Part shown: positions 20,620 through 21,198 of the stretch, in pieces
Position numbering within the stretch: the first letter of the stretch is position 1
Layout: each line of letters starts with the position of its first letter
Assembly (NCBI RefSeq): GCF_006345805.1
Contig: NC_043007.1
Span: forward strand, 7,440,001 to 7,504,000
Direction: 5' to 3'
DNA length: 64,000 nucleotides
Source of the DNA: Octopus sinensis
Taxonomy: Eukaryota
Made by a program: the position numbers and the translations under genes
The notes under the pieces: generated by a model
The model's input: only the letters and a program-made list of their open reading frames with translations
Database searches by the model: none
Told to the model about the DNA's origin: nothing

Positions 20620-21198
20620 TCAAATTTTAGCACAAGGCCAGCAAGCTCGGGGGAGGAGGGCTAGTCGATTATATTGCCCCCCAGCACTCAACTGGTACAT
20701 ATTTCATCGACCCGAAAGGATGAAAGACAAAGTTGACCTCGGCGGAATTTGAACTCAGAACGTAAAGACGGACGAAATACTTATTTCTTTACTACCCACA
20801 AGGGGCTAAACACAGAGAGGACAAACAAGGACAGACAGACGGATTAAGTCGATTATATCGACCCCAGCTCGTAACTGGTACTTAATTTATCGACCCCGAA
20901 AGGATGAAAGGCAAAGTCGACCTCGCCGGAATTTGAACTCAGAACGTAGCGGCAGACGAAATACCTATTTCTTTACTATCCACAAGGGGCTAAACACAGA
21001 GGGGACAAACAAGGACAAACAAGCGGATTAAGTCGATTATATCGACCCCAGTGCGTAACTGGTACATAATTTATCGACCCCGAAAGGATGAAAGGCAAAG
21101 TCGACCTCGGCGGAATTTGAACTCAGAACGTAACGGCAGACGAAATACGCTACGCATTTCGCCCGGCGTGCTAACGGTTCTGCCATCTCACCGCCTTC
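20620..21198 (-). mobile_element. Family A SINE trimer: head + 184-bp unit + 184-bp unit + tail-2 unit
   Basis: Units 20965-21148 and 20781-20964; junction gacgaaatac|(c/t)tatttctttac at 20780/81 and 20964/65. Confidence 0.92.

Follow-up and report, generated by a model that had tools for sequence, protein, structure and literature searches.

Head-to-tail stacks of an octopus SINE joined at one nucleotide within its own head

The three-unit stack and its element

The window analysed here—a 64-kb stretch of the Octopus sinensis genome (NC_043007.1:7440001-7504000)—contains a stack of three units of a short interspersed nuclear element (SINE), joined head to tail at one fixed nucleotide within the head of that element. 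Positions below are those of the window unless a contig is named, and the assembly in which further copies were searched comprises 2.72 Gb in 13,516 contigs. The stack occupies 20616-21197 on the minus strand: a full 233-nt SINE precedes two further units, the nearer of them 184 bp long. Unit 1 (20966-21197, minus strand), identified by BLAST against a monomer consensus and by reading of the sequence, is a SINE of the type that we designate X and spans consensus positions 1-233 minus one G at position 50, with the first 49 positions of its head at about 21149-21197 (minus strand). Unit 2 (20782-20965, minus strand) is a 184-bp X unit corresponding to positions 50-233, whose join to unit 1 reads GAAATA/GGTATTTCG at 20966/20965; whereas unit 3 (20616-20781, minus strand), joined to unit 2 as GAAATA/AGTATTTCG at 20782/20781, runs from position 50 to about 168 and continues into a different tail, tail-2b (..GCTGGCCTTGTGCTAAAATTTGAAATCAATA). 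The BLAST match of unit 3 to the 233-nt monomer consensus covers consensus 51-168 at 20663-20780, with the tail-2b following. Units 1 and 2 diverge by 5.8% across positions 60-230, and Tandem Repeats Finder reports a period of 184 bp at 20663-21148 (2.6 copies, 90% matches). The entire stack is flanked by a target-site duplication (TSD), whose upstream copy (AATATCTTGGAGGACCA, 21200-21216, minus strand) agrees in 14 of 17 bases with the downstream one (AATATTTTGGAGGGTCA, 20599-20615, minus strand). The 22-mer GTAAAGAAATAGGTATTTCGTC, with up to 3 mismatches allowed, occurs four times in the window, always on the minus strand (13191-13212, 20771-20792, 20955-20976, and 60668-60689), and not once in shuffled sequence.

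The consensus of the SINE measures 233 nt (AAGGCGGCGAGCTGGCAG...GTAAAGAAATA). Its head is predicted to fold into acceptor-like stems plus a 13-bp hairpin, in which positions 33-45 pair with 50-62 around the loop UAGC (46-49), so that position 50, 49 nt inside the head, would be the first base of the 3' arm at its boundary with the loop; positions 50-54 read GGTAT. The last six bases of the element, GAAATA (228-233), are the reverse complement of TATTTC at 52-57 in that 3' arm, the join GAAATA-GG-TATTTC thus forming a near-palindrome in which the tail mimics the 5' arm of the hairpin (CGAAAT). ARAGORN detected no tRNA in the window and Rfam gave no match at 20500-21300, though by eye the head contains a B-box-like GAGTTCAAATTCC. 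The segment ..CTTTGCCTTTCATCCTTTCGGGGTCGATAAA.. is presumably CORE-like. An octopus SINE, named OR1 or OR2, is a CORE-SINE (PMC4824008, PMC4758252), to which the present element may correspond. With up to 3 mismatches allowed, the native head context is present 185,084 times genome-wide, and TSDs of 10-20 bp surround 7 of 10 tail-1 monomers, as befits a short, dispersed, high-copy element with variable TSDs. Tail-1 copies fall into two sublineages, X and Y, told apart at positions 202, 221, and 223: X carries G, T, and G and the tail GGGTAGTAAAGAAATA (its end also reading ..TGTGGGTAGTAAAGAAATA), and Y carries A, C, and A and the tail GGGCAATAAAGAAATA, the last 11 bases being identical in both. 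Two further tails are distinguished, tail-2a (..GCCTAGAGTAGAAAAGAATA, from a rough consensus) and tail-2b (..GCCAAAATTTGAAAC..).

We place the true boundary of the join at GAAATA/GGTATTTCG because monomers with TSDs end in GAAATA. One of these, at 35295-35512 (plus strand), is an X monomer with the TSD GGTAGTCATT, in which GGTA is part of the target; the other, a tail-1 monomer at 39643-39875 (minus strand), has a 17-bp TSD (TATATTGATATGTATAT). The latter recurs about 1.09 kb away, at 40730-40959 (minus strand), with identical TSD and flanks, the pair being a local segmental duplication and not two insertions. A sequence-only reading of the window had put the join on the 3' side of the hairpin, which holds at the loci that it reported other than the variant at 14096/97 treated below, but the boundary lies one base 5' of where that reading had set it; the 184-bp length that it gave for tail-1 units agrees with both the Tandem Repeats Finder period and the BLAST match to consensus 50-233.

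Two other loci of the window carry the same join. In the second stack a full-length X unit (60679-60904, minus strand) is joined at position 50 to a last unit composed of consensus 50-174 and a truncated tail-2b (60554-60678, minus strand), while an old SINE head fragment, consensus ~2-81, lies directly upstream of the X unit (60905-60985, minus strand); this fragment and the X unit together have the layout expected of a classically resolved nested insertion. At the other locus, a Y-type unit (13018-13201, minus strand; consensus 50-233, tail GAGCAATAAAGAAATA) lies downstream of an X/50 join at 13202/13201, and the X-type unit above that join (13202-13349, minus strand) has an internal deletion and a 5' end formed by the position-17 segment (AGAATCGTTAGCACG), to which a Y tail is joined at 13350-13380 (minus strand; GGGCAATAAAGAAATA/AGAATCGTTAGCACG), a minor second join site. 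The supposed variant of the join at 14096/97, attributed in the sequence-only reading to a unit of the same family, belongs instead to a separate repeat of about 167 nt (13929-14095, plus strand), with a Y-like tail (..GTTTGGCCCCTTGTGGGCAATAAAGAAATTA) joined near position 52 of a tail-2b-type SINE at 14099-14221. This repeat has at least 663 candidate copies of 89-96% identity, every one of them starting at the equivalent of window position 13929, and may be another non-autonomous element sharing the partner of the SINE.

Two side features complete the description of the window. A head-only SINE fragment at 9709-9811 (consensus 2-103) is bracketed by the arms of a perfect inverted repeat of 30 nt (agagagaaagcaaagactgaaaattttcag and the reverse complement, 9632-9661 and 9809-9838); and a 107-bp tandem repeat, unrelated to the SINE, extends over 57461-58052 (5.5 copies, 93% matches; also called at 213 bp).

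The join across the genome

Exact matches to the join GTAAAGAAATA/GGTATTTCGTC number 27,469 in the genome, against 0 in the reversed control; allowing up to 3 mismatches raises the count to 81,677 (31 in the control), these genome-wide counts being lower bounds. The proposal that SINE units are joined at one fixed nucleotide of the head is thus borne out, and random nesting or chance is ruled out by the shuffled and reversed controls, with 0 matches each. Stack architecture was examined in 30 further junction-centred loci, all in the first 10 Mb of contig C1, together with 200 kb of random regions; the other large-sample results are counts and listings of 100 matches of 35-nt patterns. At those loci the layout is [1-233][50-233]n, the last unit covering either the whole of 50-233 or only 50 to about 170, with a different tail after it, so that the order anticipated from the window—a head, tail-1 units, and then another tail—recurs. 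The stacks span 2 to 10 units (14, 7, 5, and 1 stacks with 2, 3, 4, and 10 units, respectively); among the 30, 19 begin at positions 1-3, the other 11 have 5' truncations that fall at scattered points, and the ends are true tails. First and inner units are X, the last unit being X, Y, tail-2a, or tail-2b. The join has neither added nor missing bases, and its sequence is uniform. One member of the sample, an X-X dimer (L021, C1 near 6575821), has a perfect 20-bp TSD (AAGAAACGTTATTTCTGTTT) that itself resembles a deleted SINE head, with positions 17-26 joined to about 54-62.

The constant unit length of 184 bp and the two fixed unit ends are what a 184-nt circular RNA (positions 50-233) would yield if reverse-transcribed by a rolling-circle mechanism, as had been suggested along with the fixed join. 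The stacks nevertheless open with a complete head that is joined in register, finish at a true tail that often is another subfamily's, and show no permuted ends, while different haplotypes are possible among the X units of one stack; we regard a circular template as extremely improbable.

Which sublineage stands upstream of the join was read from the flanks of the first 100 tails of each type along contig C1. The X tail, with 75,529 exact genomic copies, is followed by position 50 in 54 of 100 instances and by position 17 in 2, the rest of its flanks being non-SINE. The Y tail (16,179 exact copies) is followed by position 50 in only 2 of 100 and mostly by AGAA(A/T).., TATA, or AATA; the tail-2a (6,796 exact copies) in 0 of 100, its flanks beginning T(T/A). 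The difference between X and the other tails at position 50 is significant at p below 1e-17 (Fisher), and no X tail among the 100 is joined to position 1. Put otherwise, of the 56 X ends joined to a SINE, 54 meet position 50 and 2 meet position 17, with hosts of four tail types. The upstream partner of the join is therefore X-specific, despite the last 11 bases that X and Y have in common, and the sharp peak at position 50 is the one that the sequence-only reading had expected in the flanks of tail-1 ends. The X haplotypes upstream of one Y subtype differ between stacks, and many independent join events have occurred: as had been proposed, what the window contains is the product of a recurrent site-specific event and not of random nesting.

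The 46 X flanks outside SINEs start with (T/G)(A/G)TA(T), with TATA in 18 and GGTA in 9. This motif lies inside TSDs—GGTAGTCATT, GGTATTAGCATTCAAA, (G)GTAGTAAC.., and AGTATCTTCTC—and therefore is part of the target and not of the element; since positions 50-54 read GGTAT, the join site equals the ordinary target motif of X, a coincidence that is hard to explain by an RNA feature alone. Each sublineage has a flank signature of its own: GGTA or TATA in X; AGAA(A/T), echoing its own terminal AGAAAT, in Y; and T(T/A) in tail-2a. The second, rarer join at position 17 (AGAAACG) matches the AGAA flank preference of Y.

An RNA feature is nonetheless at the centre of one alternative, according to which the reverse transcriptase of a long interspersed nuclear element (LINE) would, while copying the RNA of any family member, drop off at the hairpin, at position 50, and continue from the 3' end of an X RNA, so that a single integration would produce the whole stack. 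The join does fall exactly at the loop/3'-arm boundary of the predicted 13-bp hairpin, and such template switching would accommodate one TSD per stack, equal unit ages within a stack, and the roughly geometric fall-off in stack size (14, 7, 5, 1). It leaves unexplained, however, that GGTA is at once the first bases after the join and the ordinary target of X, and that Y RNA, though often the first to be copied, is almost never the acceptor despite the common last 11 bases; the absence of position-1 joins in 100 X tails and the lack of added or missing bases at the join speak against it; and it does not predict the classical nested forms described below, nor last units that are old and unique. 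Solo starts at position 50 likewise make up at most 8 of 100 GGTATTTCGTC contexts, mostly non-SINE, in a listing whose last pattern letter excluded the canonical G, so that we used the contexts and not the counts. We consider template switching improbable. The same rarity of solo copies starting at position 50 led us to reject a model in which the enzyme runs off a cleaved RNA end and then jumps.

Proposed insertion into resident copies and its alternatives

Besides the joins in register, classical nested insertions occur. The pattern GGTATTTCGTC-N(0-25)-AAGGCGGCGAGCTGGCAG gave 128 exact matches and, among 100 places listed, 85 independent loci; in 39 of these 85 the gap measures 5-6 nt (chi-square against uniform, p = 2e-32), which is to say that, read from the 5' side, the host sequence breaks off at 65/66 and a full-length head comes next. 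A host end at 65/66 is what a 15-16-bp TSD anchored at 49/50 would leave, and the many subtypes of the host fragments indicate separate events. Both sides of the insertion are visible in 3 of 22 stacks, examples of this layout being L018, L015, and the window stack at 60.9 kb; in L018 an outer TSD, CATTGAAATGT, surrounds the arrangement [X' 1-233][50-68][X 1-233][50-tail-2a]. Head-only tandem arrays, consensus 1 to about 65, were also observed, with periods of 64-66 and 76 bp and identical junctions GGTATTTCGTCTGCCG/AAGGCGGCGAG (C1:195358953-195359246, C7:15322782-15323080, and C18:40399009-40399172, and further at C9:16123246-16123342 and C4:103048075-103048271); their layout suggests that they expanded from the 65-bp head duplication that classical nesting leaves behind.

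The explanation that we tentatively favour, while granting it slightly less than an even chance, is that X inserts in situ at 49/50 of resident copies and that most of these insertions are resolved in register. X would integrate by target-primed reverse transcription, with bottom-strand nicks falling just 5' of GGTA (or TATA). The GGTAT present throughout the family at 50-54 would then expose resident X, Y, tail-2a, and tail-2b copies to insertion at 49/50, producing the join GAAATA/GGTATTTCG. The incoming cDNA being homologous to the head of the host over 49-65 nt, its 5' end would usually be closed in register with the incoming strand kept; alternatively, a later collapse between the adjacent 65-bp head repeats of [host 1-65][X 1-..] would give the same result. 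Either route would yield [1-233][50-...], without an extra head or a new TSD, while a minority of insertions, resolved classically with a 15-16-bp stagger, would leave [host 1-65][X 1-233][host 50-end]. Read-through templates might bring in several units at once, or local duplication might produce them, and long homogeneous arrays would grow by unequal crossover. The resolution in register, the choice of strand, and the addition of several units in one event are what we infer from these layouts, as is a part for the read-through 3' extension of the X RNA (GGUAUUUCG...), which might help to guide the 3' join by pairing with the nicked target.

That last element can be carried further. X might be a self-propagating "homing" SINE, in which the read-through extension (GGUAUUUCGUC...) pairs with the nicked bottom strand and itself sets the join, the homology of the head closing the 5' end, by analogy with the part of the 28S flank in R2. 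We deem such a mechanism, in both its parts, possible but rather doubtful. Were it correct, the flank signatures (GGTA in X, AGAA in Y, TT in tail-2a) would be inherited "address tags" and not preferences of an endonuclease.

The ages of the units bear on whether stacks were built in place or moved whole. Within a stack, the tail-2a last unit exceeds the X units in divergence (11.1% versus 7.6% at non-CpG sites; Wilcoxon p = 0.037), the 10 such last units examined have no private mutations in common, and for the two last units tested, those of L007 and L014, no copy of more than 87% identity exists genome-wide, the best ones reaching 83-87%. TSDs were found around 3 of 14 tail-2-ended stacks and 2 of 18 tail-2 monomers, compared with the 7 of 10 tail-1 monomers, though TSD age is underpowered as a discriminator between insertion in situ and whole-stack movement, two runs having given 3-5 of 14; in the window stack, moreover, the TSD copies match in 14 of 17 bases while the two X units differ by just 5.8%. 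The age and uniqueness of the last units, together with these TSD data, favour insertion into older resident copies. The earlier suggestion that tail-1 units sit inside a tail-2 host is accordingly upheld as far as the last units are concerned, these being older and unique, but not as regards the heads, which mostly are as young as X.

Those same data bear on composite masters, dimeric or multimeric source genes that would arise, once a few insertions had nested, when Pol III transcripts initiated in an inserted X read through the rest of the host and rely on its tail for retrotransposition; most stacks would then be copies of such genes that moved as units. A single TSD surrounds 11-12 of 22 stacks, with a summed TSD divergence of 18 of 203 bases; heads are X-like and unit ages are the same within a stack; the consensus unit contains no TTTT run, so that read-through would be possible; L012 and L030 share variants on either side of the join; one X haplotype is enriched among X-2a dimers; and upstream of 5'-truncated stacks, L007 for instance, a host head is lacking. 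Yet masters of this kind would not account for the lack of any close genomic copy of the last units of L007 and L014, nor for tail-2a last units that share no private mutations and are older than their own X units; TSD detectability in tail-2-ended stacks equals that of old monomers, and X haplotypes vary among stacks with one last-unit subtype. Composite read-through RNAs probably contribute to the stacks, whereas composite masters as the explanation of the join seem to us unlikely.

The uniformity of the join could alternatively reflect a single ancestral dimer, the join having arisen once, spread by recombination or gene conversion in the shared core, and been multiplied by unequal crossover. 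Some last units (L014, L015, L017, and L018) are indeed X-like at their start (TGCCGCTA) and tail-2a-like thereafter, and L029 and C1:7400078-7400478 share private variants that indicate local amplification. Nevertheless, 6 of 11 tail-2 last units are already tail-2-like at 63-66, which would confine the crossover to 13 bases; adjacent units of short stacks differ by 10-14%, as much as unrelated copies do (between-stack mean, 12.5%); and the classical nested forms and the GGTA motif would go unexplained. We give this explanation little credence. Unit homogeneity and hierarchical kinship occur only in long arrays—L029 (2-7%), C1:7400078-7400478, L008, and L040—and recent local slippage, ruled out as the origin of short stacks by their 10-14% divergence, is retained for those arrays. 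Descent from one dimer and slippage, the two alternatives that the sequence-only reading had itself raised, are thus not borne out as a general origin.

Several observations weigh against insertion in situ with resolution in register. The heads of tail-2-ended stacks are young, with 4.5 differences per 47 nt (X monomers, 3.8; tail-2 monomers, 10.9; Mann-Whitney p = 2e-5), which excludes simple retention of the host head for most stacks; divergence of head versus body is 9.8% versus 5.3% in tail-2-ended stacks and 7.1% versus 5.0% in monomers, and a mixture with about 20% host-derived heads is possible. Homology-guided 5' joining, as first envisaged, hence stands as retention of the incoming strand or as a later 65-bp collapse, but not as retention of the host head. 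X and Y units that share a stack are equally old (permutation p = 0.015), the ages between stacks ranging from 2% to 13%; this equality would not result from independent repeated hits and calls for multi-unit templates or local duplication. L014, with a TSD matching in 19 of 20 bases and a last unit diverged by 11%, fits whole-stack transposition better. Position-50 sites receive 54 of 100 X ends and generic GGTA sites only 9, although by our estimate the latter should far outnumber SINE heads, so that the 4-base motif alone cannot explain the excess. The stack sample, moreover, is small and local, the 30 junction-centred loci being supplemented by 264 kb of unselected sequence. Finally, no empty (pre-insertion) site was encountered, and the partner LINE was not found: in the sequence examined, just one stretch outside the SINEs carries the tail, 13906-14094, which has no relatives among 1.84 billion proteins and proved to be a short repeat.

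Bearing on octopus genomes and relation to known systems

SINE expansions are a hallmark of octopus genomes. About a third of the well-preserved position-50 sites (81,677 versus 185,084) have X upstream, which proportion suggests that much of the expansion consisted in self-stacking and not in free dispersal. Repeat annotation and age estimates are affected as well, for headless inner units look like 5'-truncated copies. With tens of thousands of events, the stacks offer a natural system for the study of target choice by a non-autonomous retroelement and of 5' ends resolved by homology, and they show how dispersed SINEs can turn directly into 184-bp tandem arrays, the seeds of satellites. If the RNA-guided variant were correct, flank-guided integration of the R2 kind would extend to a SINE.

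We found no description of these multimers in the octopus literature. SINE multimers as such are already known; new here are the fixed base inside the head, the inner units that reach the true 3' end, the single upstream sublineage, the mixed hosts, and the scale. R2 is a site-specific non-LTR (long terminal repeat) retrotransposon in the 28S rDNA; like it, X would have as its target one fixed nucleotide of a repeated sequence that resembles an RNA gene, possibly with a transcript 3' flank that pairs with the nick. X differs from R2 in being a non-autonomous SINE, in having a partial preference (about half of the X ends), and in that its target is its own family.

A parallel is the Dip/B1 system of the Gobi jerboa, whose multimers form by insertion into resident SINEs and in which nearly half of the Dip copies occur in tandems of up to eight full-length units (PMC10702118). 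There too many copies lie in head-to-tail multimers (up to about 8-10 units), some of mixed families, and the SINE carries the preferred target of the machinery. The jerboa units are full-length, however, and are presumably joined at the tail, whereas the octopus join lies at one base 49 nt inside the head, the A-box part of the head is missing from the inner units, and one sublineage stands upstream. In the blood clam Scapharca broughtonii, for its part, stacks of the form TSD1-(SINE)n-TSD1 contain head-truncated inner units, for which unequal recombination was proposed (PMC11481361). These resemble ours in being built of a tRNA-related mollusc SINE, with a complete first head, the same head truncation in the inner units, and one TSD per stack; but the first and inner units of the clam are truncated at the tail as well, the layout of an internal tandem duplication, while the inner units of the octopus reach the true 3' end, another subfamily often supplies the last unit, and the joins number at least 8e4.

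Dimeric and trimeric composite SINEs, among them Alu and the tRNA-derived dimers and trimers cited in PMC4758252 and PMC10702118, amplify as units. The octopus stacks are likewise fusions of monomers with the promoter in the first unit only, but no single master is evident, the two last units tested have no sisters, and both the number of units and the partner family vary. The SINE-derived satellites of squamates (PMC10702118), lastly, share with the octopus stacks a tandemly repeated SINE portion, a longer terminal unit, and homogenised long arrays; in squamates the repeat units are few and vary by taxon or locus, whereas in the octopus one and the same join recurs at tens of thousands of dispersed loci, mostly in stacks of 2-4 old units.

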